Positions 34,384 through 50,100 of a stretch of DNA of 64,000 nt are shown in pieces (the stretch's first letter is position 1; each line of letters begins with the position of its first letter). This DNA is from Styela clava. Lineage: Eukaryota. The translations under genes were made by a program, and so were the position numbers. Location: assembly GCF_964204865.1 (NCBI RefSeq), contig NC_135258.1, positions 8,804,001 to 8,868,000 of the forward strand, read 5' to 3'. The notes beneath the pieces are model-generated. The model saw only the letters and a program-made list of their open reading frames with translations. It searched no databases and was not told the origin of the DNA.

Positions 34384-35434
34384 CGGGATAAAACAGTACA
34401 GCAGTATACTCAGATACTGGTATACCAGTATGGGGTTGGTTGGACTAGCTTACATCGGTACATTCACGTTACGTCTGTGGATACTTAGCACAGCCAGAGC
34501 TTGATTCTGAATTTTTTTGCCAGTAAACGGAAAAATGCAGAAATGGCAATACAAAATCTGAATTTGCCCTCTTTACAGTTCTAGACTTTGAAATGTTAGT
34601 ACAATAGTATCTAATTACTGAATGAAGTTAAACGGCTAAATTATCAACAGCTTTATGATGATCGGATGGATACCCAACCTACAGGAACAAGAGAAGTTGC
34701 TCTACACCAAGGGTATCCAACTCAAAATATGTCATGGGCCACTTTTTGAACTTTATTAATGACGCGGGCCACAAACCAACAAATTACGTTCAAAATGGAT
34801 ACACAATAATAACATAAGAAATCTGAATATATTTGGTGGAACTACATTGAACTCTCACATCATACAAGACATGAAACATATTCATGTATATTTACTTGTG
34901 CTGGATATTTGGCACTGTTTTGTAGCGGCGATAAACTTATTTAGCGTTGGTTTGATAGTCTTGAGACAGCATACAAATGTTCGTCGTGTGCGGAGGGCTA
35001 TTTGGTAACTGCTCGGGGCAAACATCTATATTAAAAAAAATCTGTTTTATTTTTTTCTATGTATTATTTGCGAAAGTATTCAAATGATGAGTAACATTTA
35101 TCCAACATATTGGAGTAAATGTTAGAGCACGATTTGTTGTTTCCACGTTGGATGTTCGCTAATAAAAAGCATAATTAAATCACAACTAGTCATCTCATTT
35201 AACGCAACGTACAAAAAATATGGCGACTAAGATGAGTAATCGCAATTTGCTGTCATTTAATGTTTATAGTTTTCATAATATCAGAATTAACATCACGGAA
35301 GATGGACCATCATATCATAACCTTATGAGGAATATGAACCAGTGAGTCTTATCCGCATATTCATTACTCATCACACTATATCTCTCAGAACGACTCTAAA
35401 AAGTAATTGAAGGAAAAATCGATATGAATTTTTA

Positions 35435-35529
35435 ATGACGACTTTCCTGTAACGGAACAAAGAATTCTATAAAAGGGGACAATACGCATATTTTGCATCA
35501 TTTCACTTTGTATAAACGAAAGAACTCAG
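35435..35529 (+). promoter_or_regulatory. P1 core promoter and short non-coding first exon
   Basis: ATGACGACTTTCC at 35435-35447, TATAAAA 35468-35474, Inr-like TCATTT (A at 35500), CAG|GTGAG donor at 35529/35530; same layout in P2 and P3. Confidence 0.75.
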
Positions 35530-35758
35530 GTGAGATTTTAGAGAAAATATTTTTTTTTTCATGTAATTATGAGTGTTTCATTAGTAAGTATTGCCTTTGA
35601 TAACTCAGTTTTTCAAACACACTCTACACTGGAGAAGTTCAAGTTTTATAATATTACTTTGTTTCTATTAAGATATTCCTTAATCTTTAAAAATGTTCAT
35701 TTTATCTCCAATGACTTTGCAAAATTTCTATAACAGAAGTTTTACACATCTCAGAATC

Positions 35759-37146
35759 ATGAAAACTGCAATCATTCTAGCTTTGGTAGCAATATTTGTT
35801 GTTAATGTCTCAGGAGGATGGAAAGGCTTTACACGGAACCTGAAAAAACCCGGTTCAGTAGCGGTTAAAGCAGGTTCTGTCGCGCTCAAGGCAGCGAATA
35901 GTCCGTAAGTCATTTTATTCACACATTAAATATGATTTCATGAATAATTTTTTCTCATTATTTTTACTTGGAAAATGCATAGTCTTTCATAGATAAAAAT
36001 TTTGTCATGTTGTTTTGCTGAGAAGTATAAAGAAGTTGTCAAGTTTTAAAACTTTTCAACTTTTAAATTATAGACCGGGAAAGTATCAAAAAGATAAATG
36101 ACGAATAAGAATAACATAATTCCTTTACACGAAATAGCAAGTATATTTGTGAACATATTTGTGAACTAACGGAAGCTGACAAATATACATGCTTATTTGT
36201 GAAACGAAAATATTTAAAGTTATCCACCGCGCATTGTTAATTCATTCATTTTCTGTATTCAGGACGGGACAAATAGCAATGGGAAGCGCAATGAGCCAGC
36301 TCGGTGATATGCGTGCAATTAGAGAAATGGTAAGATTTGATTATTTTTCCTAAATATTTGTCTACAACAAATAAAACAAAATTCAACTCAAACGAGGGAG
36401 AAAAACTGCACAAATACTGAGGTTATACAGAATAAAAACAGCGCCCAGACTTGAAATTTAAAAAATTTGAAAAATTGAGAAACAAATAATGAAAGTACAC
36501 ATTTGTCAAAATTTTTCTCATAAATTTGATACTTGTGAATAATTATAATATTAATAAATCTTTTCGTTTATTTAATATCCAAAAGTTTAATAATCCATCT
36601 TTATCGTCACAATCAGAAGTTTTTAATTGTAGACCTAGATCAGCTCAGTTACATTCGCAATTGAATAATGCCTTCATATTTTCCCAGGACGAGACCAAAA
36701 TTAGTCAATTGTTTGACGCAATTGAAATGATCAGAGAAATGGACGACGGTATGTTTTTTGGATAAAATCACAAAAAAATTAAAAAAACATACAAAAATAA
36801 TTAATTTTGAATCTAGTCAAAATTTATCTTGCCAGTATTGAAATATTAAAAAAATAGCATTGAATATTTTATCATTTTCAAATTTTACAAGTAATATAAA
36901 TTAGTTACAAACTGGCTATATATCCGTTATTCCATATAGATTTTCAGATTTTTATATTATTAGTAAATTTTTGACTGCATAACATTTTTCTTTATTTTTA
37001 ATTAGTTAATTTAGTAAAATATTCATAACATAAACAATAAAATACCATAAACGATTGCTATTGAGAAAGTATCATTAAATTATAATATCGTTTCAGACGA
37101 ATTCCTCTACTTCGCAAAAGCTGCAAGCATGAAAGATTTTCAATAG
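35759..37146 (+). CDS. P1: secreted cationic peptide precursor (putative antimicrobial prepropeptide, styelin/papillosin-like), 107 aa
   Basis: Coding exons 35759-35904, 36263-36329, 36688-36748, 37097-37146 (GT-AG, phases 2/0/1). Translation MKTAIILALVAIFVVNVSG-GWKGFTRNLKKPGSVAVKAGSVALKAANSPTGQIAMGSAMSQL-G-DMRAIREMDETKISQLFDAIEMIREMDDDEFLYFAKAASMKDFQ*. Exon structure is conserved in two paralogs; TATA upstream and AATAAA at 37352. Confidence 0.88.
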
Positions 37147-38381
37147 AGAGTGATATAATGGAGTAAAGACAAAAAGCTACAACAATTTTTCTTAACATTT
37201 GATTTAATACTGAATTGTCAAATATTGCTTGTCTAATCAGATATATACTTCCAAAAAGTAAACGGTCAAAACTCATGTCAAAATTAACAACAATAATCTG
37301 TATTTCTTTCATGTTGCAATATGGTTGTTTTGTCACATTTTTTGTTGCCCAAATAAAGAAAGGTTTATTGAAAAATACGTGTTTATTGATAATCAAAATC
37401 AATTTATTAACCATCTGAACAGTTGTAAAAACGTTGGATGTGTTACCACCCGCTTCGTATGGAGCTCGTTATTTCCGAATTCGGTAATTTCGGGTTTTTG
37501 GGTGATTAAATATGATATGGGATTATAATCATATCCACCAATATGTGAGAGCTTATTCTTCAAGAGTCGGCCTTACGAGCAAGATGCTCGATTGTTGATA
37601 AAACGGTTTGTTATTGCCCACTTGTGGCATGTAAAATTGCCATCGTGCTATACAACATGGAGCCTCAAAGAAGTCGATTCATTCCATGAAACAATTCATC
37701 GTTATTATTTATTTGTGCGCTCATATTCAGAGAATAAATACTAGTTGAGATGCAAGTGCTAGTTGAATTTTGTAGACATATCGCTACTCGCTTTGGCAAA
37801 AAATATAGGAAAAGTAATAATCTCTCCCCTCATCCCGAGAAGTTTTATAGTGAATAGAAATCGTACAAGATTGTAGTTTTTTGTTTACCTTTTCTACGTG
37901 GGGCTTTTTAAAATTGAAATTCTGTGCGGAAATACGATTCTTTTCATTTTGAAATAAACTTACTATATATTGCGTATAACAACCTTGAATTGACACGCTC
38001 CGTGAAACATTTTTTATTATTCCTTCTGGAGATTCATAGCATAATAGTTTATAATATATATATAAAATAATAATTTCACACGACTCATGTCTTTCTATCT
38101 AAACCAGAGTTAAATCCCAAACAAAACTGACCTATTTTCATTTCCTAGATTATTGTAATCTCCTGTAATATTACAACATCAACGGGTAATGGAGAACATT
38201 GACTAAGATGTCGTCGAGGTGTGAATTCTATCATATATAATTTCCGGAATTTATTTATATAGCTAACTGTTCTCTGCAGGACTCCTTAATCATGTAAAGA
38301 AACTAAGCCATGTTTATATTTCAACCTCGGAAATAGAAAGGAGTTACTAACCCTTTACTATGCACCTTATAACAAACAAAT

Positions 38382-38460
38382 ACTGTATTTTATGAACCAC
38401 AAGGCGCACTTTGAATCATATTTTTAAAAAGCGATCGTGCGCCTTATAAGCTGGCGCGCC
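38382..38460 (+). mobile_element. Degenerate Tc2/pogo-like DNA transposon terminus in the spacer of the inverted duplication
   Basis: TACTGTATTTT...AAGGCGCAC(n)GTGCGCCTTATAA with internal inverted AAGGCGCAC/GTGCGCCTT; resembles Tc2-type ends as I remember them; no partner end found. Confidence 0.35.
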
Positions 38461-39972
38461 TCAATTGAGCACCCCACGGTGACAATACTATATCATTTGC
38501 TACCCGAAAGCAGTAGCCTAGCCTAAAAGGTTGACTGTGGTGACTAGAGTATGTTTTTGTTACTGTGACGTGATATTTTTTTAATCTAGTTGTTGCTTTT
38601 TTTTTAGCTAATATCCATACCTCTGTAACGATCTCAAAGATCTTACTACGGTTTTCACTATTGCACGTCTAATCGTAATACATGGAGGTTGTTTTGCTTG
38701 ATTTAGGAATCCAGCAGAGAACAGTTGGCTATATAAATAAATTCTGGAATTTATATCAGATAGAATTCACACCTCGGCAACATCCTAGTCAATGTTTTCT
38801 ATTACCCGTTGATATTGCAATATTACAGAAGATTGGAAACGAAAATATGGCAGTTTTGTTTGGCATTTAACTCTGGTTTAGATTGAAACACATGGGTCAT
38901 GTGAAATCCTCATTTTCACTTTTGTTTGACATTTTTTTTCTGGACTAGATAGCAAGAGGTGAGTCTCAGGGGATCCTTATTTCATAATATATTACGCTAC
39001 GAATCATAAGAAGGGATAATTGAAAGTGTTTAAAGCAGCTTCTTCAATTCAAGATTTATTCATTTCAGACATGTTGTTATATTTGATAACATAGAGGGAA
39101 TTTCTTTCAATTGTACTCAATAAACAGTCAATTTATTTCAGAATGAAGAAAATCGTGTTTCCGCGCAGAATTTCAATTTTAAAAAGACCCACGTAAAAAT
39201 TTAAACCAAAATTTACAATGATTTTTATTCACTATAAAACTTCTCGGTATGAGGGTGAGATAAATAAATACTTTTCCTATATTTTATGAGAGCGGGTAGC
39301 GATACGTCTAAGCAATTTAGCTAGCCCATGCATCTTAACTATTGTTTATTCTTTGGATATGCGCGCACAAACAAATAATAACGATGAATTGTTTCACGGA
39401 ATGGAACGTCTCCATGGCCATATCCTAGGTCCCTATAGTATAATCGAAATTTTACATGCCGCAAGTGGGCGATAACAAATTGATTTCTAAAAAATCAAGC
39501 AACACGATCGTTAGGGCCATCTCTAGTAGTGGTTGTTCATCTGTAACTAGCAAAGCGCCAAGAAGAATAAGTTGTTACAGATTTGAAGGTATAATCCCAG
39601 ATCATAATTAATCACCCAAAAACCCCAAATTACCGAATTCGGAAATAACAGGCTCCGTAACGTAGCGAGGTTTAACACATCCAAAGTTTTTGCAACTGTA
39701 CTTTGTTCAGATGGTTAATAAATTGATTTTGTTTATCAACAAATACGTATTTTCAATAAACCTTTTTTTATTTGGGTAACAAAAAGTGTGACAAAACAGC
39801 CATATAGCAAGATCAAAGAAATACTGATTTATTGTTGTTAATTTTCACATAAGTTTTGACCGTTTCTTTCTTTGAAATATGATTAGACAAGCAATATTTG
39901 GCAGTTTAGTATTAAATCGAATATTAAGAAAAATAGTTGTAGATTTTTGTCTTTACTCCATTTTAACACTCG

Positions 39973-41452
39973 TTATTCAAAATCTTCCATGCTTGCAGCT
40001 TTTGCGAAGTAGAGGAATTCGTCTGAAATGATATTATAATTTAATTTAATTAATAGTAATTGTATATGTTCAATATTTTACCAGATTGATTGAAAAACAT
40101 ATAGATCGAAAATTTAATAAATATCTAATGAAAATCTCAATTGAGTAACATTTGAATAGGTAGTTCAGTGTCTTATTTATATTTCTCACAAAATTTTTGA
40201 AAAGTCATAAATATCAAATGTTAATTTTTCAGGATTCTGTCAATATAATCTACACCGAAGTGTCACAAAACTAGTTATTTTTTATGTTATTTTTATTCAT
40301 TTTATTTTCGTGGTATTATGTAAAAATATACCGTCGTCCATTTCTCTGATCATTTGAATTGCATCAAACAATTGATTAATTTCAGTCTCGTCCTGGAAAA
40401 TTTTGAATGCATTGTTAATACGAATAATATTGATATCTATTTCAACGATTAAGAACTTCTAGTTGTAAATAAATAATGTAGAGACAAACAATCAGTTGAG
40501 TATTCAAAAAATCAAAGGCATTAATGACTATTTTATTATTTTCAATCAATCAAATGTATGAAAAAATATTTCTTGTCAACTGGTAGGTGTTTACATTTTT
40601 GTCGTAGGCGAATATTTAGGACAGTAAATTGAAACTCACCATTTCTCTAATTGCTTGCACATCACCGACAAGGCCTATTGCGGCATTCACTCCAGATTTT
40701 ATTATTGCTCTACCAGTCCTAAAGACAGAAAGTGAATAATTTAAATAAAAACCGTGATTAACGTCTAACTTGAGAGTTTTTAAAACACTGAAATTACTTT
40801 GTACTTCACAGCAATATGTCATGAAATTTTATATTTAATGGACACGGAGTGGACTTATGGATCGTTGTTTGTTGTTGTTGTTCTTGTTAGAATTCATCTT
40901 CTTACATTTTTTAAAAGTCGCTTTACTCTTTAATTACTGGACCAATTGCTTTGTAATTTTCAGTTGTCAAAGATTGTTCGTTAAAGACTGTTACTTTTAT
41001 TTATTTCAAAAATTTTCGTGGGCTCTAAGAGATTCGTTTTTTTTGTATGCGATGACGCCATCAGAATAAAAAAACGCTGCTTGTGGTGATTTCGTCCGGA
41101 GACAATGCCGTGAACACAGCGGGTACCGGTAGGATATTGCGAAAGACTGTATGCGCGTACTACTCCGTGTCCATATATTTGAGCATCGGTTTCTTGTAAT
41201 TGAATGCTATTTTTTTACAAATTGACAATGATGATGTCAAAGTAAAATACTTTAAGGTAATAATTACAAAGTCGTTGTCACATGAGTGCGTATTGAGTGT
41301 GAGAATAAAATGACTTACGGACTTGTCGCTGCTTTAGCCACAGCTTTGCCAGCCTTTGCACCAAACTTCAAGATTTTTCTTCCAAATCCCCATCCTTCGG
41401 TGTTTTCAACAACAAGCAATGCTACTAAAGTCAAAATGATTGCGGTCTTCAT
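39973..41452 (-). CDS. P2: secreted cationic peptide precursor (putative antimicrobial prepropeptide), 107 aa
   Basis: Minus-strand exons 41452-41319, 40718-40640, 40392-40332, 40022-39973. Translation MKTAIILTLVALLVVENTE-GWGFGRKILKFGAKAGKAVAKAATSPTGRAIIKSGVNAAIGLV-G-DVQAIREMDETEINQLFDAIQMIREMDDDEFLYFAKAASMEDFE*. AATAAA (minus) at 39767-39772. Confidence 0.88.
40834..41197 (+). mobile_element. Non-autonomous HINE/DINE-1-like element, family 2, inside an intron of P2
   Basis: Perfect 12-bp subterminal IR TGGACACGGAGT (40839-40850) / ACTCCGTGTCCA (41162-41173), (GTT)n tract at about 40864-40888, 3' end TATATTTGAGCATCGGTTTCTTGT; homologous to 50239-50510. Confidence 0.65.
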
Positions 41453-41744
41453 GGTTTTGTTTTCTGAAGTTTAATATGGTATTTTATCAATTATACATTA
41501 TGTTTGGTCATTCCCCACAAAATACAAGGTTTGTATGGTTTTTGAAATAAAATCTAAACGAATTCCAAATAAAAAACTATGAAGAAATAGGAGTTTATAA
41601 ATAGAAACAAAAAATAGAATACATATAGAGTATATACGCTAACTTCTCTGTTGTAATGGGCTTTGTAAGAATTCGTTTAAAAAGATAAAAAATAATGCTA
41701 AACCCACGACTATACAGAAATTATCAATTTTTCTGAAATCTCAC

Positions 41745-41841
41745 CTGAGTCTTCTTCGTCTTTACAAAGTGAAGTGATGCAAAAGATGTGTGTTGTGCCT
41801 TCTTTATAAAAATCCTTGCTGGTTGACGGGAAATTCGTCAT
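41745..41841 (-). promoter_or_regulatory. P2 core promoter and short non-coding first exon
   Basis: Minus strand: ATGACGAATTTCCC (GGGAAATTCG on + at 41828-41837), TATAAAG 41808-41802, Inr-like TCACTT (about 41775), CAG|GTGAG donor at 41745/41744. Confidence 0.75.
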
Positions 41842-42467
41842 TGAAAATCCATCTGGATTTTTTCTTTAATTACTTTCATAACTTTTTAAGACAGGAAAGG
41901 ATTTAGAGCCGCTTTGATGGGTAACGCAATGCGTAATGAATCATATTTGTACCTGATGTTTACCATACGGTTATGACGAAAAAGTTCGTTTTACGTTTTA
42001 TGAACTCTGACATTCTCTAACTCCATGAACATGACATGAATTTTCTTGTTTGTTTTTGCTAAAATCACTCAACTCATTTTGGTCGTGTTGTCGGTTATGT
42101 TCCATATTTTTGCTACATTGTGTTAAAATGAGATGACTAGATGTGATTTTGTTTTTTATGCTTTTATTAGCAAACACCCTAATAGTGATCTATCATTTAC
42201 TTCAGTATGCTGAATGAATATTACACATCACATGAAAGATAGCAATCTTATTTTGCTAACATGCACAGTGACTCGAAAAAACACAACCCAGAAATTTCTT
42301 TATCACCCTTGCAAAAATGAAGAACATTTATTTCACGCTTTGTGTATGATTGTACACCAAAGATTCAGTAATTGGAAACAAAACAAAAGTTCGCACAAAA
42401 GTTATGTTCTCTCGAGAATGTGTTCCTAATAACCTGTACATTAACTAAACACATATTTTCGATAATT

Positions 42468-42580
42468 TTCGGTATTCCCGAAGTATGTGTACCAGGTTGA
42501 AGGCCATTATTTTGTACCAATTTTCCTTATTTCAGTTCTATTACGAGTTCGAGGACTAGCCAAGTGACTCCCGTATAGTA
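42468..42580. mobile_element. Partial copy of the same MITE-like family
   Basis: TTCGGTATTCCCGAAGTATGTGTACCAGGTT matches the TIR above; internal GTTCGAGGACTAGCCAA matches the reverse complement of TTGGCTA..AGTCCCCGAAC at about 14686-14711. Confidence 0.5.
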
Positions 42581-45464
42581 TAATTTTATTGTTATAGCGT
42601 CGAAAGTACTGTGCTCGATACAGAATTTAATATTAAAAGGTAATTTCGTATATATAGAACCTTTCCAAATATGGTAACTACATTTATGCATCAAAAATCT
42701 GAACTTGTATGCTCGTGTCAGATCTCTATTGTTGACTGGGCGAACTGCCATGATGGTATTTTATTTTATTTAGAAGTATTCTCGCATTTCTGCTTTCTGC
42801 TATAATTTTCTCTTCTCTTACACATAACATTATTGCGCGGTAAAATATTTTAAATTTTTGTCTGTTAAATCTGTTTAATTTAGTCAATTCAATATTTTCC
42901 ATTCAACTCACACTCTTTTGCTTGAATCATCCATTGATTTTTTGCATTGTAATGCCCTTTTTATTTAATAAAAATGAAAAATACAATTTTATAATTTATT
43001 ACCGATACAAACTTTAGCAATGTTCATAAACCTATTTTTTTTTATTATTCCCTCGCGTTGTCGCAGCTTTGTGTCAATCTTTACCCTGTCAAAGACCGAA
43101 TATTGAAAAAATCAAACGCAGCAGTTATTGAAGACTGACGAAGATCTCATACTCGTAGCACATTTTATGTTTACTCAAGTTGTTATGTATGGAGCGCAAT
43201 TGCGCGCAACCGTGGGAAAATTAACTTACGTAGCACAGCCCCCAAAAAATTACAAAATAGTGCGATACACTTGTACTCACAATGATAAACTAAATACATT
43301 CAGAGTGTTCATTTTTCTTATTTCTTTTTTTTTCGAGAGATGTTTAGATTATACGGCAACGTCAATTATAAATATACTTTTCCGACCCGGAAGCGAATTT
43401 TTCTGAATCATAAACACTTTTCTCGATTGGCATTGTGCGGCTTTGTGTGTTCGACCTAATTTTCAATTTGCAACGATATTATTCTAAATCGCGATCCCAC
43501 AATGTCAAATGATAGCTTTTCACGCGATACCTACTTTCGTCCGAAAAGTATTAAAATATATTTAAACCTTTTAATTAGCTATGGTATGTGTTGAATATTT
43601 TACTAGTCGTTTGATTATGTTTTTTATTTGCAAACACTCATTGTGAAAATATCAAATCGTGCTCTATCATTTATCGCAAGATGTTGGATGAATGTTACAC
43701 GACATGCGAAAACCATCTAATTTATTTTGTTAATATATTTAATAAACATACATTTAGACTTTTGCACAACAGTAAAGGAGATTATTATAATACAATTTTA
43801 CAACATTTCTCAAACGGGGAAAAAATTTGATGTTTCGAGGATCAAAATGTTTCTTTTTATTTGCATGTGGTATTACTATACTACTGGTATATTATATTTG
43901 CTGGTATTTTGTGACTGTTAATTAGTTTCAGCTGCTGAAATAAAGATTCCATTTTATAATTAACGATGATTTTATTTTCATATTTCTGAAATTGTTATGC
44001 TTAATACAAAATTGAATATATATTGAAAATATATACATATAAATATTTTTGTTAAAAACTCCTACATTTGTAGAAAATATTTGAATAAATCAAAATATAA
44101 ACTTGGTGTCATATTCGATCTTAAAAATGTTGACTAAGGACGTCTGTGTTTTTATTTTATTCCCGTAGGCGATTTTATTCTCTTTCTTTCTGATGCGATT
44201 TGAAAATATCTTTTTAACTTAAGTCATCTAAAGATTGACTAAATTGCGCTATATTTTAATTATTTGAACTTCTATAGCAAGTATAAGAAATGAAAAGTAC
44301 CAAGTAAATGTCTCATTGAATAAATTTTACGTTGCATGAACCAGATAAATGTCTTGCTGCAGTAATACTTGTTCGATTATCCCGATAGAAGTAAACCGCC
44401 AAACTGTTTCGGTAATATTTCATTTCACAAAATAATTTTTTTTAAATTAAAATCTAATAAAAATGGAATCATTGTAGAACTTCAACAAGTATGTGTGACT
44501 AGCGAACAATGTATTCTCACTAGTTTTTTATCAAATATTTTTAATACTTATTAAGTGTTATATCAAGCGCAGTAGTTTCAGAATATGACCAAGAGGGAAG
44601 CTTTTTAAATATAAAAATAGAATAAACAGGACTGATTTCACCTATAATGAAATTTTTTTTTATTATATTTTGCTGCTACTTTAGAGTGAGGTCTACCGCT
44701 ATGTATAGCTTACTCAGATGCGGCAATTAGAGTGTTTATAAAAAAATGCATGAAAAGGTGTGTTCATGAGGGGGGCGTGGTCCATTCTTGTCTTTCTTGA
44801 AAGAGTATATTATTTTTCCGTATACAAATCATTTATTGCATCCAAAAAAAATTCATTATTGCAAAATATATGTTATGTTTTACAGTTTCCAATCGCCTTT
44901 GTTCTGTGATAATAACTGCACTCGTGCTTATAAACGTGAAGGAAAAGGTGTAAATGTAAATCTCTCATATGCATTTAAGTTATTTTTTGAAGTTGAAAGT
45001 TGGGAAGTCGGTCACAAAAACCAGGCAAACATTTCTAATGAAAAATTTTTTATATTTTTTTTTATCCGAGGTATATATCGATGCATTCATGTGTTTATTA
45101 ATATTTATCTAACATATTGGTGTATATCTGGATCACGACTTTTTATGTACTGGGATTTGCTAATAAAAATACAATTAAATCACAACTAGTCATCTCATTT
45201 TACACAATATACAGAAAATATGAAGAAAAATTGAAAATACGTCCAAGATGAGTAAGTGTCAGTCATTAAAGGATTATAGTTTTCATAATGTGAGAATTCA
45301 CAAAACGGAAGATAAACCATCTTGTCATGAACCTATGGAAAACAATAAGATGTCTTCTCCGCTTATTCATTAGTCATCACATTATTCCTCAGAACGACTC
45401 TGAATCCCTTCCTGTCTTAATGATTTACAAAAGTAATCAAATCATAAATCCAGATGGATATTCA

Positions 45465-45561
45465 ATGACGAATTTCCTGTCAACCAACAAGGAATTCTAT
45501 AAAAAGGGGACAATACACATCTTTTGCATCACTTCACTTTTCAAAGACGAAGAATACTCAG
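45465..45561 (+). promoter_or_regulatory. P3 core promoter and short non-coding first exon
   Basis: ATGACGAATTTCC at 45465-45477, TATAAAA 45498-45504, Inr-like TCACTT (A at 45531), CAG|GTGAG donor at 45561/45562; acceptor TTTCAG at 45844 just before the ATG exon. Confidence 0.75.
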
Positions 45562-45855
45562 GTGAGATTTCAGATATAATATTTTTTTATATTTCATGGT
45601 GAGTGTTTAATTAGTTCTGCCTTTGCAAACTCAGTTTTTTAAACAATCTCTACAATAGAGAAGTTTGAGTTTTAATATATTATTCTGCTGTTGTTTCTAT
45701 CAAGAAACTTCTTAAATCTTTACAATTATTCAGTTCGAATTCATTTCATTTACAATGACTTCACAAATAACAAAAGCCTTCTCGGTTTCATTGCATTCCA
45801 TATAAATTCATTTTGTTTTCATTAATCAAGTCATTTAATTTCAGGAAACAAAATC

Positions 45856-47136
45856 ATGAAGACTGCAATCATTCTAGCTTTGGTAGCATTGTTTGTTGTT
45901 GATGTATCCGGAGGATGGGGAAGCTTTACAAGGGTCTTGAAAAAAGCTGGTTCAGCCGCGTTCAAAGCAGCAAAAAGCCCGTAAGTCATTTTATTCACGC
46001 ATTTAATGTGCATTCAGGGAATACCGCTTTTGATAATTTGCTTCTCAGGTATTTCAATAAATTTATCTCATTGTTCCTAATTTGTAAACGCATGGCATTT
46101 AATTAATGGATAAATATATAATTTTTATGGCATTTTGCTGAAAAGTATAAAATGGTTGTCAATTTTTAAAACTTCCTGCCTTTTAAATTATCGATAATAT
46201 CATTAACATAATATCATTAAACAAAATATCCAGTATATACATATGTTAGCTTACTTACATTTATACTTGCTATTTTGTAAAAAGAGAATACTTCATAGCG
46301 CGTCTCTAAATTATTCACTTTTTTTTATACAGTACCGGTCAAACAGTTATTAGAACTGGATTAAACCTGCTCGGTGATGTCCGTGCAATTAGAGAAATGG
46401 TGAGATATAATTTAATTTCTTGAATACTTGCGTACCACAAAAGAGTAAAAACTTACCCAGAACTAGAACAAAAACTACACAACTTCTAAGGTTACAAAGT
46501 TGAACACAATTAGCGTAAAACATTAAAAATTGGATTTAAGCAAGATATTTGAAAAAGAGCGAATTTGCACATTTGTCAAGAAATTTCTTCATAACGGTAT
46601 TGCTTGCAAATAATTAAAATATAAATCAATGTAAATTTTTTTTTTTTTCAATTACCCAAAAGTTTCATATACAATTGTTACAATCAAAAGTTTTCAGTTA
46701 TTGAACTAGATCATATCAGTGTCATACGCAATTAACAATGCATTTATATTTTCCCAGGACGAGACTGAAATTAATCAATTGTTTGATGCAATTCAAATGA
46801 TCAGAGAAATGGACAACGGTATGTTTTTAGAAAATATCAGAAAAACTAATGAAACAAACACAGAAAAATAGTCTTTTCATCTAATTTAAATTTACTCTAC
46901 CAAAAACCTGAAAGTCGAATATTTAACGTTTTCGGAATTTGTTTTAAAATGTACTTGATGTACTTTGTATTTTGTACATCGGTATTTTTCATTTTTAGTA
47001 AATATTCGGTTGCATGAACCAATTTTAGGAAAATATTCAACACAACTATTTAAAAATAATATCAATAGATGATAACACCTTTTTAGACGAATTCCTGGTT
47101 TTCGCAAAGGCTGCAAGCATGGAAGATTTTGAATAA
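45856..47136 (+). CDS. P3: secreted cationic peptide precursor (putative antimicrobial prepropeptide), 100 aa
   Basis: Exons 45856-45980, 46333-46399, 46758-46818, 47087-47136. Translation MKTAIILALVALFVVDVSG-GWGSFTRVLKKAGSAAFKAAKSPTGQTVIRTGLNLL-G-DVRAIREMDETEINQLFDAIQMIREMDNDEFLVFAKAASMEDFE*. AATAAA at 47354-47359. Confidence 0.88.
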
Positions 47137-50100
47137 TGAGTATCAAAATGGAGTAAAGACAAAAAACTACAATTTTTTCTGATTATTTGACTTAATATTA
47201 ATTTGTTGAATATTGCTATATTAATCAGATAAATAGGGCCTACTTTAGAAAAGTTAACAATCGAAACTTATTTGAAAATTAAATAGAATAAATCAATATT
47301 TCTTATGTTTTTGATATTGCTATGTGGCTGTTTTTTCGAACTATTTTTGCCCGAATAAAGAAAACTCTATTGAAAATATGTGTCCATTGATAAATAAAAT
47401 AAAATCATCTGAGGCTGAGCAACCTTTAGATGCACAAACATTACAGTTCTTTGCATTTATAACATATAGATCTTGTCTTCTTCTGGTTAGGTAATTTTGG
47501 GTATTTTGATAATTAACTATGTTCTGAGATTATACCAGTCAGCCTGTATGCTGGTTCCTGGCGTTTTGCTGGTAACATATCAGCAATCACTATGAAAGTT
47601 GGCCTAACGAGCATTCTGCTGGATTGTTGCGGTTTGTTATCATCCACTTGCGACATGTAGGATAGCCAATACGACAGGAACATAGAGACTTGAGGAGACG
47701 GTTTGTTACAACAATTCAACAATTTTTATTCATTTGTGAACACATATACACAGAAAATATAAAAATTAAAGGGTGAATATTGAAAGGCTCGCTAAATTTC
47801 AATGACGTATAATTTCGAGATTGTGAAAAATATAGAAAAAACATTATTCCTTGTTTCTTCACCTCTTGAAGTTGCTTTTGAAAAAAAAAGTAACTAAGCA
47901 GTTGATATAACGATTCACTCTGATATCAGTTTCAGGAAAATTTATACATTGATCACACAAAAAAAAATCTAGTATACGCGTTAGCACTGTTTTGGATTTT
48001 ATTCAAATGTGCTGAAACATTTAAAAAATAAATTTTTAAAGTAACGCAAGTTGTGGCATCATGACAATGACGTTTAGCAAATCACTTCGTCTGTGTAACC
48101 GCACTATCTAATACAAGCAAATTACTGTAGCGTTTAAAATAAGAGTCCATTTATCATAAGTATTTTTTGTTTATAGAATTTTTTATTTTGTTGATTAGTT
48201 GCTTAAATATTAATTACTACTTTTTTATTTTTATATCTCCTAAATTTCCCATTGATTTTGTCTCCAAAAAAAAAAATCTCAGAATTTTAGGAACAATACA
48301 AATTAGAACCATATATCTAAGTAAATGTTATTACTACAAGCATTTCCGACTCACGTTTATATGTTTTGTACAGAATAGCACACATCCTATCAGAACTACT
48401 TTGAATATTTTCGTAGTATCAGCAAAAGCGTTGAAACAGAAATAAAAAACACTCCAAATCAAAAACACTACAAAACCTTTATCATTCATATCAGCTGTGA
48501 ATTTTCATTTCTTTCAGGTTTTAGGGCAAAAAAAGTATTTCACTTTGTCGAACGTGAGGTTCATAGTAACTTGTGTTAGGGCCGGATTTGTCATCTGGCT
48601 GGGTAGGCTGAGATCAAAAGGCCTCGACATTCAAGTTTAAATTATTAATTATTTCACGTTGTTCTTAAAATGAAAGGCTTGTTCTGTAGCTAGACTATAA
48701 GCAGTTTAAAATGTTTTGAAACCCCCAAACCCAAATATATTCCGTTTTACCTTTGCTCTTTCTCGATGAAAATCGAACTAATCTGAAATTGTTCAAAGCG
48801 AATGTATTCTGAGAATTCATCTTGGGATGAACCAAGTTTTTTTTAGTGCGTCACGGACAATAATGACAATAACTGAATAAAAATGCTTTGCGTACTACTT
48901 GTACTGCGATGCAAATAGAGGGCAAGTTGATGGCCCTATTTAGAGGCAGGTTTGCTGTCTGTGTTGGTTGTGAGGAAAGTAGGGGTTTTGTGTTGGGCCG
49001 ACAAAAAAAGACAATGCATAGAGATTTACTGAAAAGCGGAGTTGATTTCCTTTGACGGAAGGCTGCTTATTTATACGAGCAACTAACTATCTTTGTTCTT
49101 TCAAGGAGTATTTATGTTCACAACACAGATCAGATGACGGGGAATTCAGTACGAAAGAAGAAAATGATTCTTCTTTTTAAGTCACAATAATTGATTCAAT
49201 TCCTAATACTTCGATTCTGTTTTGTTCTAAACAACGCCCTTTTGGATGAAGTTGAGTTCCAGTTGAGAGTGTCAGCAAAGTTCATTACGTATTTTCAATT
49301 TTTCAATTCAACATCTACCGTTTGAATTCCGGTTTTTATAGAATATACCGTAAAATTGGTGGTCTACCCACTTACATTCCTTACTTTCGATTTAAATTTC
49401 TGATGTGTCCATTAACCCGACGTCATTGTCACGGTCATTGAACAGCAAGGCGTACTTGCACAAAAGCTATTGCGCATTCCCGCATTGCGAATCGATTGTT
49501 GGCAAAAGCAAACTTACATGTACTTAAATCTAAAAGTAAATCTTTTTCATGACAAAAATGACATTCATCAACTTTTTCACTTCTGTGTTGACGAGTTCAG
49601 GATTTGAAGTCAACCGTATAGCAGTTCATTTGTCTTATGTCGTTCCAAAAAGATATTTAACATTTATGATGAGATCGTGATATACCCAGCAAAACGTTAC
49701 GCATATGTAGCAAAGATAATATAATGTGGTGGTTATGGTATTTTGATAGGGTTGGTTTAAAACAGTTTCTGCGTGGTCAAACAAATTACCTAAGATGACA
49801 GCAGTTATTATGCTCCATTTATATCGTATACAAAGACCAGGTATTGTTGGAACAATGGATATGTTGTATTCCGCAAAGTGGAATATTTGACCAAATTGAA
49901 TTGTGCTACCCCTATACAGTCCAATACCTTTTTAAATGAAACAATTCAAAATTTAAATCTTATTCGCAATATTGATTTGGTTACATTATTTGTAATGTGC
50001 ATTATATTGTATTTTTGAATACATGCGTTGATGTTTGAAAGACATGGCGCTAAGTCGGTGCAAAACTTCTGTCTCCAGCCTAACCTTCAATTAAATAGCA

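Follow-up and report, generated by a model that had tools for sequence, protein, structure and literature searches.

Styelins C, D and E of the tunicate Styela clava were described by Lee (1997), Zhao (1997) and Taylor (2000), as summarised in PMC8659048. Their published precursors consist of a signal peptide of 22 amino acids (aa), a peptide of 31-32 aa, an amide-donor Gly and a propiece of 26 aa; the isolated active product is the cationic part, and styelin D carries a 6-bromo-Trp at position 2 (PMC8659048). The mature styelins are rich in Phe, Tyr and His and have a conserved KHK motif (PMC9966394), and the title of Zhao (1997) introduces them as cecropin-like. A styelin-like prepropeptide is also known from the styelid ascidian Botryllus schlosseri. 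This precursor, botryllin, has 158 aa and a mature peptide of 37 aa with a net charge of +11 in which KHK is kept; the propeptide is stored in the granules of cytotoxic morula cells, and the synthetic peptide is bactericidal (PMC9966394). The clavanins and clavaspirin are His-rich peptides of 23 residues (PMC9966394). Here we describe three paralogous genes (G1, G2 and G3) from a window of 64,000 nucleotides on chromosome 10 of S. clava (G000:C10:8804001-8868000). They belong to a larger family, which we interpret as a branch that diverged within the styelin-type precursor superfamily rather than as an independent invention.

In insect cecropins the second residue is Trp, and a cationic, amphipathic helix at the N-terminus is linked by a Gly/Pro hinge to a more hydrophobic one at the C-terminus, which is amidated through a Gly. 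Cecropins are a functional analogue of the plan of the S. clava family, by design rather than by demonstrated sequence kinship, and their precursors differ in having no long acidic C-terminal propiece. The amphibian preprodermaseptins and bombinins also combine a conserved cassette of signal peptide and acidic pro-region with a fast-diverging cationic peptide in multigene clusters, but their acidic piece stands before the peptide and not after it, and there is no sequence homology. The closest language-model clusters were likewise the amphibian antimicrobial precursors bombinin (0.81) and dermaseptin (0.77), scores below 0.9 being a lead only. Papillosin of Halocynthia papillosa (Galinier 2009, sequence in PMC4306955) is a 34-aa hemocyte peptide rich in Lys, Ala and Gly that starts G-F-W. 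Set by eye against the G3 peptide it has KK-GSAA-aromatic, KAA-K and GLN-L in the same order, a gapped likeness of approximately 15 residues between two low-complexity sequences; it differs from the family in having no Pro hinge. A description of the papillosin precursor was not found in the literature examined.

Region 35000-48000 of the window was read and the exons were translated from the window sequence (Table 1). G1 and G3 lie on the forward strand and G2 on the reverse strand. Each gene has one non-coding exon 1 and four coding exons of 50-146 bp, and all splice sites are GT..AG, including those of 9/9 coding introns. In all three a TATA box lies approximately 25 bases 5' of a conserved leader, the short non-coding exon 1 has the donor gtgaga, and an AATAAA is found approximately 210-225 bases 3' of the stop codon. 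The original prediction, made from the sequence before this analysis, had proposed three intact genes of this structure, and the coordinates and introns bear it out.

The precursors have 100-107 aa with a predicted signal peptide of 19-20 residues. From the GW start to the invariant Gly-Asp, the core peptides of G1, G2 and G3 are 43, 43 and 36 aa long, have zero Asp or Glu and carry net charges of +6, +8 and +6. The propiece that follows the Gly-Asp has 44 aa in each, with net charges of -6, -11 and -9, and contains an internal near-repeat, AIREMDE .. MIREMDD (IREMD..IREMD). Lengths and charges match exactly those first predicted. The Ser-Pro-Thr-Gly hinge and the L/V-G-D end of the core peptides are both present as claimed, and the translations reproduce the layout of signal peptide, cationic peptide, Gly and acidic propiece. 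In 5/5 chromosome-10 genes G20 and W21 do not vary, GW being the predicted start. The core peptides of the window genes contain 0 His, 0 Tyr and no KHK. At 36-43 residues and without His they are unlike the clavanins and clavaspirin.

The family is larger than the three genes first proposed. A genome DNA search found two further chromosome-10 copies 45-87 kb downstream, at C10:8908679 and C10:8951155, which are LOC120340203 and LOC120340204. Weaker DNA matches led to a sister cluster on chromosome 4 (C4:4.844-4.971 Mb, cluster sequence partly covered) with at least 11 genes of the same four-coding-exon layout, which brings the family to at least 16 paralogues with the five on chromosome 10. 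One chromosome-4 subgroup starts GWLGK..NP-TVKK.. and has one Cys, and a second starts GFFGK..SP-TGKK... All members of this cluster end GD(V/M)R(T/S)LRE(M/L), followed by 61- and 50-nt exons coding NDAEMDQMLEAIKMIRDMDE and DEFNDFENAQSVEDLE. Two more distant genes were found on chromosome 3, at C3:19872809 (L030) and C3:23057163 (L031, reverse strand). These genes, of the GWKWWKKAVKTAKKIWNHP.. and WGFIRKGIKKALHVVKK.. type, keep the GW, the ..ALREM exon end and an LFDAVNRIR-like acidic exon, and their tails are longer. One chromosome-4 member (L018, G000:C4:4902503-4905598) has exons 2, 3 and 5 with no recognisable acidic exon 4 within 1.5 kb, and may be a decaying copy.

The original prediction had called the genes hidden, which holds only for an open reading frame track: all three are RefSeq gene models, already annotated as unnamed proteins. 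The RefSeq proteins equal our models, and all are named "uncharacterized protein [Styela clava]". G1 is XP_039264094.2 (LOC120339922), G2 is XP_039264093.2 (LOC120339921), and G3 is the last 100 residues of XP_039263405.2 (LOC120339236). Both XP_039263405.2 and XP_039264431.2 (LOC120340204) are started by RefSeq at upstream ATGs, in G3 within 45450-45561 and in LOC120340204 in the homologous leader. These RefSeq starts are probably wrong, with the signal-peptide Met as the true start; in G3 the extra 36 residues read through the TATA box.

No Pfam family was matched by the query precursor, even at E<=10. Among 1.84 billion representatives, a profile of exon 2 found no styelins and nothing beyond the cluster of the family itself. 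Word searches of 5.8 billion proteins, with a single protein and with a profile, returned only the five S. clava genes; these searches are limited by a length window and by the need for shared 5-residue words, and missed even the chromosome-4 sister cluster, which leaves absence unproven. The literature search found no paper naming the LOC or XP identifiers of these genes, and an apparent match, 'Cla-H', was rejected as an unrelated clavanin derivative.

G1 and G2 are transcribed and spliced. Contigs from sequencing runs were placed on 35500-41499, which holds G1 and most of G2; they are Logan contigs, whose depth is unusable for ranking the genes. Three RNA-like runs, X1, X2 and X4, were chosen because they contain approximately one fifth of the words of the stretch, roughly the exon share, and X5, with nearly all words, served as a DNA control. 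The G1 joints 35904>36263, 36329>36688 and 36748>37097 and the G2 joints 40022>40332, 40392>40640 and 40718>41319 are found in contigs of X1, X2 and X4, and none of them in X5. All six coding-exon joints of the two genes were seen at the predicted junctions (6/6), with GT..AG (or CT..AC) ends throughout. A loose end at 41467 (X1, X4) runs on into 41749-41778, the non-coding exon 1 of G2, which confirms the intron in the 5' untranslated region (UTR) of this gene. Read by eye, loose ends at 40332 match the beginning of exon 5 in G3 (X4) and in its paralogue G5 (X1, X2); these two genes thus appear to be spliced and expressed as well, and the exon 4-5 junction of G3 has this indirect support.

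Three other features of these contigs were noted. The joint 36758>37064 has non-canonical TG..TG ends and skips 305 bases in intron 4 of G1. Runs X1, X2 and X4 show it at low depth and X5 lacks it; unspliced RNA from an indel allele, or a paralogue placed at the wrong locus, could account for it. An X4 loose end at 35821 follows the G1 signal-peptide sequence and continues with 119 other letters that by eye start G-S-F-F-R-K-A-A-S-T, which suggests an expressed paralogue or allele outside the five assembled chromosome-10 genes. On the reverse strand at 38759-39810, lower-depth contigs of X1, X2 and X4 reach 0.6-1 kb past the AATAAA of G2. They could be read-through or a longer 3'UTR isoform; they mismatch the assembly at many positions and may derive from other alleles.

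Chromosome 10 also carries a styelin E gene, at C10:16312502 and thus 7.5 Mb away from the window (L037, G000:C10:16311002-16314034). It was found with a degenerate pattern of the styelin D/E N-terminus, which gave one exact match and zero in the reversed control. The styelin D motif pattern KFYYKHKYY was discarded as a genome probe; it gave chance matches only, because an intron splits the motif. The styelin E precursor has 81 aa, namely a 22-aa signal peptide, a 32-aa peptide starting GWLRK.., a Gly and a 26-aa acidic tail, in agreement with the published styelin layout. Its coding exons measure 113/58/57/18 nt, compared with 125-146/67-79/61/50 nt in the window family. An acceptor lies 9 bases 5' of its ATG and suggests a non-coding first exon as in the window family.

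The window family and the styelins have the same order of signal peptide, cationic peptide, single Gly and acidic C-terminal propiece, although the lengths differ. The signal peptides are similar, with the core MKATILIVLVALF in styelin E and MKTAIILALVALF in the family. The GW directly follows the signal in both (..SEA-GW in styelin E), the Gly-Asp processing point lies in ..LGDM in styelin E and in ..LGD(V/M)..M in the family, and the acidic tails have a DEF motif in common (DEEFQDF and DDEFLYF). Both have four coding exons, with intron 1 in phase 2 inside the mature peptide and intron 2 in phase 0 after GD..M. The mature peptide has 36-43 aa in the family as opposed to 32 aa in styelin E, and the propiece has 44 aa as opposed to 26, which makes it 18 residues longer; the original prediction was right both on this length and on the lack of styelin or clavanin Tyr/His richness. 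The Ser-Pro-Thr-Gly hinge and the IREMD..IREMD repeat are features of the family that the styelins do not have, and similarity in the mature region is not significant. Botryllin, compared by description only, agrees with the family in its styelin-like layout and cationic mature peptide, and is unlike it in its precursor of 158 aa, its mature net charge of +11 and the kept KHK.

A hidden Markov model (HMM) of eleven family members scored full-length styelin E at 26.3 bits. In a control of 3000 shuffles, in which the composition of signal, mature region and tail was kept apart, the mean was 1.1 (sd 1.8) and the maximum 16.7, and 0/3000 reached styelin E. The bulk of the score comes from the signal peptide and the GW. 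The best local alignment of the propieces pairs styelin E DMTDEEFQDFMK with family eMDeDEFndFak, in line with the likeness of EMDDDEFLYFAK to the styelin propiece that the original prediction had noted.

We think it reasonably likely that the genes make styelin-type host-defence precursors, the products being cecropin-like peptides that would act on microbial membranes. The signal peptide would route the prepropeptide into the secretory pathway, and its removal would leave a Gly-Trp (or Trp) N-terminus. The chain would then be cut between the invariant Gly and Asp, as in styelins; the Gly would donate the amide to the new C-terminus and the 44-residue acidic propiece would be released, having neutralised the cationic part until the cut, as is commonly supposed for propieces of this type. 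The product would have 36-43 residues, a charge of +6 to +8, an amphipathic helix in its N-terminal half and a more hydrophobic one after the Ser-Pro-Thr-Gly hinge, and given this cecropin-like design would most likely target microbial membranes. The N-terminal halves of G2-G5 are indeed more amphipathic than shuffles (z 3.2-3.6, p<=0.002), which agrees with the helix part of the helix-hinge-helix proposal. G1 is lower (z 2.1, p 0.018), because the split fell at an earlier Pro and left 10 N-terminal residues to be scored. By analogy with styelin D, the invariant Trp may be 6-brominated. We infer the cleavage points, amidation, any Trp bromination, the cell type and the antimicrobial action. 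The observation behind the original prediction is confirmed and its interpretation partly supported; function, amidation and Trp bromination stay at this conditional level.

Several results weigh against this reading. In its descent, styelin E without the signal scores 4.9 bits (mature region and propiece), a value reached or exceeded in 57/3000 shuffles (p ~0.02), and its propiece alone gives p ~0.016 against the family. Intron 3 is in phase 0 in styelin E and in phase 1 in the family, and the mature peptides of the family have neither the Tyr/His/Phe richness nor the KHK motif of styelins. In its product, a Glu precedes the GW in G2; this makes the signal cleavage site of that gene uncertain, and by the -3/-1 rule cleavage of G2 may leave W instead of GW. 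The low-confidence AF2 model supports a helix break at Ser-Pro, with helices at 24-42 and 45-60 and, in the tail, at 65-69, 73-88 and 91-103, but its mean pLDDT of 46.7 is too low for a fold search and its secondary structure alone was used. The RNA status of X1, X2 and X4 is a tool's guess. No homologue outside S. clava was found in the representative-profile and word searches, which leaves the reading without support from conservation in other species.

The first of these results could mean that the likeness to styelins is convergent or confined to a common signal-peptide exon, and that the family is an independent invention. The weak score without the signal and the differences in intron 3 phase and tail length speak for this view. 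However, the full-length score is above 3000/3000 segment-wise shuffles, the GW at the signal cut, the phase-2 intron, the phase-0 intron after GD..M and the DEF motif follow in the same order, and intermediate families with the same cassette occur on chromosomes 4 and 3. We regard an independent invention as unlikely, though not negligible. Taking the sequence, the order of features and the intron phases together, common descent of styelin E and the window family is quite probable. We place the family inside the styelin-type kind, neither as a styelin nor as a new kind, because the definition by composition fails but the precursor cassette and the gene structure are common. The 'distinct, possibly undescribed' family of the original prediction needs qualifying: its mature peptides are unlike styelins and no paper was found that names the genes, but it is better read as a styelin-type branch than as an independent family. 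A wider view, which we offer tentatively and hold to be plausible rather than probable, is that the styelins are the tip of a large S. clava superfamily on chromosomes 10, 4 and 3 with one signal and acidic-propiece cassette and a fast-diverging core, a tunicate counterpart of the dermaseptins. On that view the window clade would form a new class of cecropin-like helix-hinge-helix peptides and might be orthologous to papillosin.

The family is under selective constraint. Among the five chromosome-10 genes, the pairwise ratio of nonsynonymous to synonymous divergence (dN/dS) is 0.32 in the signal, 0.54 in the mature region and 0.31 in the propiece. It is below 1 in each, so all three regions are under constraint; together with the spliced contigs and the RefSeq matches, this excludes chance open reading frames. 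The dN of the mature region is approximately four times that of the flanks, and that of the propiece is 0.087. Identity inside the chromosome-10 clade is 81% in the signal, 55% in the mature region and 82% in the propiece; between this clade and the chromosome-4 cluster the values are 60%, 32% and 53%. Families of host-defence peptides typically show a fast mature region between conserved flanks. Positive selection on the mature peptide was considered and is unsupported, dN/dS being 0.54, with dS raised there too and few sites. In the codon alignment of these genes, dS in the mature codons is 0.67, approximately twice that of the signal (0.36) and the propiece (0.28); possible causes are gene conversion of the flanks, a locally higher mutation rate, or alignment noise on few sites.

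The same divergence pattern bears on the suggestion that these are amidated signalling peptides of a neuropeptide, hormone or cytokine-like kind and not microbicides. The layout is generic to processed secretory peptides: neuropeptide precursors, too, have a signal peptide, a conserved pro-region and a Gly ahead of the cut, and the expressing samples may be of any tissue. However, there are no dibasic cleavage sites, the cut being the styelin Gly-Asp, and the peptides are long and amphipathic with a net charge of +6 to +8. The mature region diverges fast over at least 16 paralogues in which signal and propiece are conserved, the opposite of receptor-constrained ligands. With the kinship to a styelin gene added, we give a signalling role little chance.

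The conservation of the propiece permits another reading. The functional product could be this 44-residue acidic part, or the part could work as a module for granule sorting or metal binding; the variable cationic part would then be a spacer or neutraliser. The propiece is the best-conserved part (82% in the chromosome-10 clade, 53% to the sister cluster, with the low dN given above) and is 18 residues longer than the styelin one. Against this, the active styelin product is the cationic part, and the cationic part of the family keeps the GW, the hinge, the amphipathicity and zero acidic residues, which is unexpected of a spacer. A conserved pro-region with a variable peptide is moreover the rule in antimicrobial families, for example in amphibian preprodermaseptins. 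Such a role for the propiece has hardly any probability in our view. Its strong conservation does suggest a further role of the acidic tail within a host-defence precursor, in sorting, folding or protease recognition.

A cationic amphipathic helix design would also suit cytolytic effectors directed against eukaryotic cells, in allorejection or in anti-predator or anti-fouling defence from cytotoxic morula-type cells, with antibacterial action secondary. Styelins are reported to be hemolytic and cytotoxic besides antimicrobial (PMC10608444), and botryllin is produced by cytotoxic morula cells (PMC9966394). The present data do not separate such a role from the main reading. The peptides of the window family are, however, of moderate hydrophobicity and rich in Ala, Gly and Lys, which usually favours bacterial selectivity. 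We consider a primarily cytolytic role quite improbable.

If the host-defence peptides proposed here are active, they would form a natural, cecropin-like set that evolved in salt water, from a species whose styelins and clavanins already serve as antibiotic templates. The at least 16 natural variants on a fixed scaffold are a ready-made structure-activity series, and they would show the styelin precursor cassette reused many times within one genome. From the conserved acidic tail of 44 residues and the non-basic cut at Gly-Asp, it would appear that the family has a processing protease in common with styelins and clavanins. The advance is incremental, as these genes already stood in the annotation as unnamed proteins.

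Table 1. Features of the three genes and of their duplication in the window (window positions; X1, X2 and X4 are sequencing runs)
Feature	Positions	Strand	Remarks
G1 CDS	35759-35904, 36263-36329, 36688-36748, 37097-37146	+	107 aa
G2 CDS	41452-41319, 40718-40640, 40392-40332, 40022-39973	-	107 aa
G3 CDS	45856-45980, 46333-46399, 46758-46818, 47087-47136	+	100 aa
G1 TATA box (tataaaag)	35468..35475	+	motif and leader also kept 5' of G2 and G3
G1 non-coding exon 1	35490..35529	+	putative 5' end; donor gtgaga from 35530; exon 1-2 junction inferred from homologous G2 junction
G1 exon 2: 5'UTR, ATG 35759, signal peptide, N-terminal cationic part up to Ser-Pro	35737..35904	+	joint 35904>36263
G1 exon 3: C-terminal peptide part, Gly-Asp processing point, propiece start (..LGDMRAIREM)	36263..36329	+	spliced contigs
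G1 exon 4: acidic propiece helix (DETKISQLFDAIEMIREMDD)	36688..36748	+	spliced contigs
G1 exon 5: propiece end, stop codon to 37146, 3'UTR, AATAAA 37352-37357	37097..37357	+	contig 37133-37352
G2 TATA box (~41801-41808) and non-coding exon 1 (~41785 down to 41745)	41745..41812	-	X1, X4 loose ends at 41467 match 41749-41778
G2 exon 2: ATG 41452, signal peptide, N-terminal peptide part	41319..41463	-	residues 1-45 of XP_039264093.2
G2 exon 3: C-terminal peptide part, Gly-Asp, propiece start	40640..40718	-	joints 40718>41319, 40392>40640
G2 exon 4: acidic propiece	40332..40392	-	joint 40022>40332 in X2
G2 exon 5: propiece end (CDS to 39973), 3'UTR, AATAAA 39767-39772	39767..40022	-	lower-depth contigs reach ~38760
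G3 TATA box (45498-45505) and non-coding exon 1 (to 45561)	45498..45561	+	sequence reading
G3 exon 2: ATG 45856, signal peptide, N-terminal peptide part	45845..45980	+	translation, RefSeq match
G3 exon 3	46333..46399	+	translation, RefSeq match
G3 exon 4	46758..46818	+	translation, RefSeq match
G3 exon 5: CDS to 47136, 3'UTR, AATAAA 47354-47359	47087..47359	+	X4 loose end at 40332 reads as its start (by eye)
Inverted-duplication centre (tail-to-tail, G1 and G2)	38064..38916		midpoint ~38500

G1 and G2 are the arms of a tail-to-tail inverted duplication. The arms 36509-37979 and 40571-39111 are 74% alike, and the inner arms 38064-38298 and 38916-38693 are 83% alike. G3 (45024-47769) is a third copy of the approximately 2.8-kb unit, promoter included. 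With introns and promoter counted, the three units are only 67-74% alike, which indicates that the duplications in the window are old.

Two introns contain repeats. A high-copy dispersed repeat occupies 40900-41190 in intron 2 of G2, where the summed depth in X5 is approximately 49,600 compared with approximately 52 nearby, and where many alternative joints are found. A segment of approximately 50-120 bp in intron 2 of G1 (~36096-36217; query 598-750) has matches of 85-94% identity at more than 40 sites spread over many chromosomes, and is probably a small dispersed repeat or a Miniature Inverted-repeat Transposable Element (MITE).

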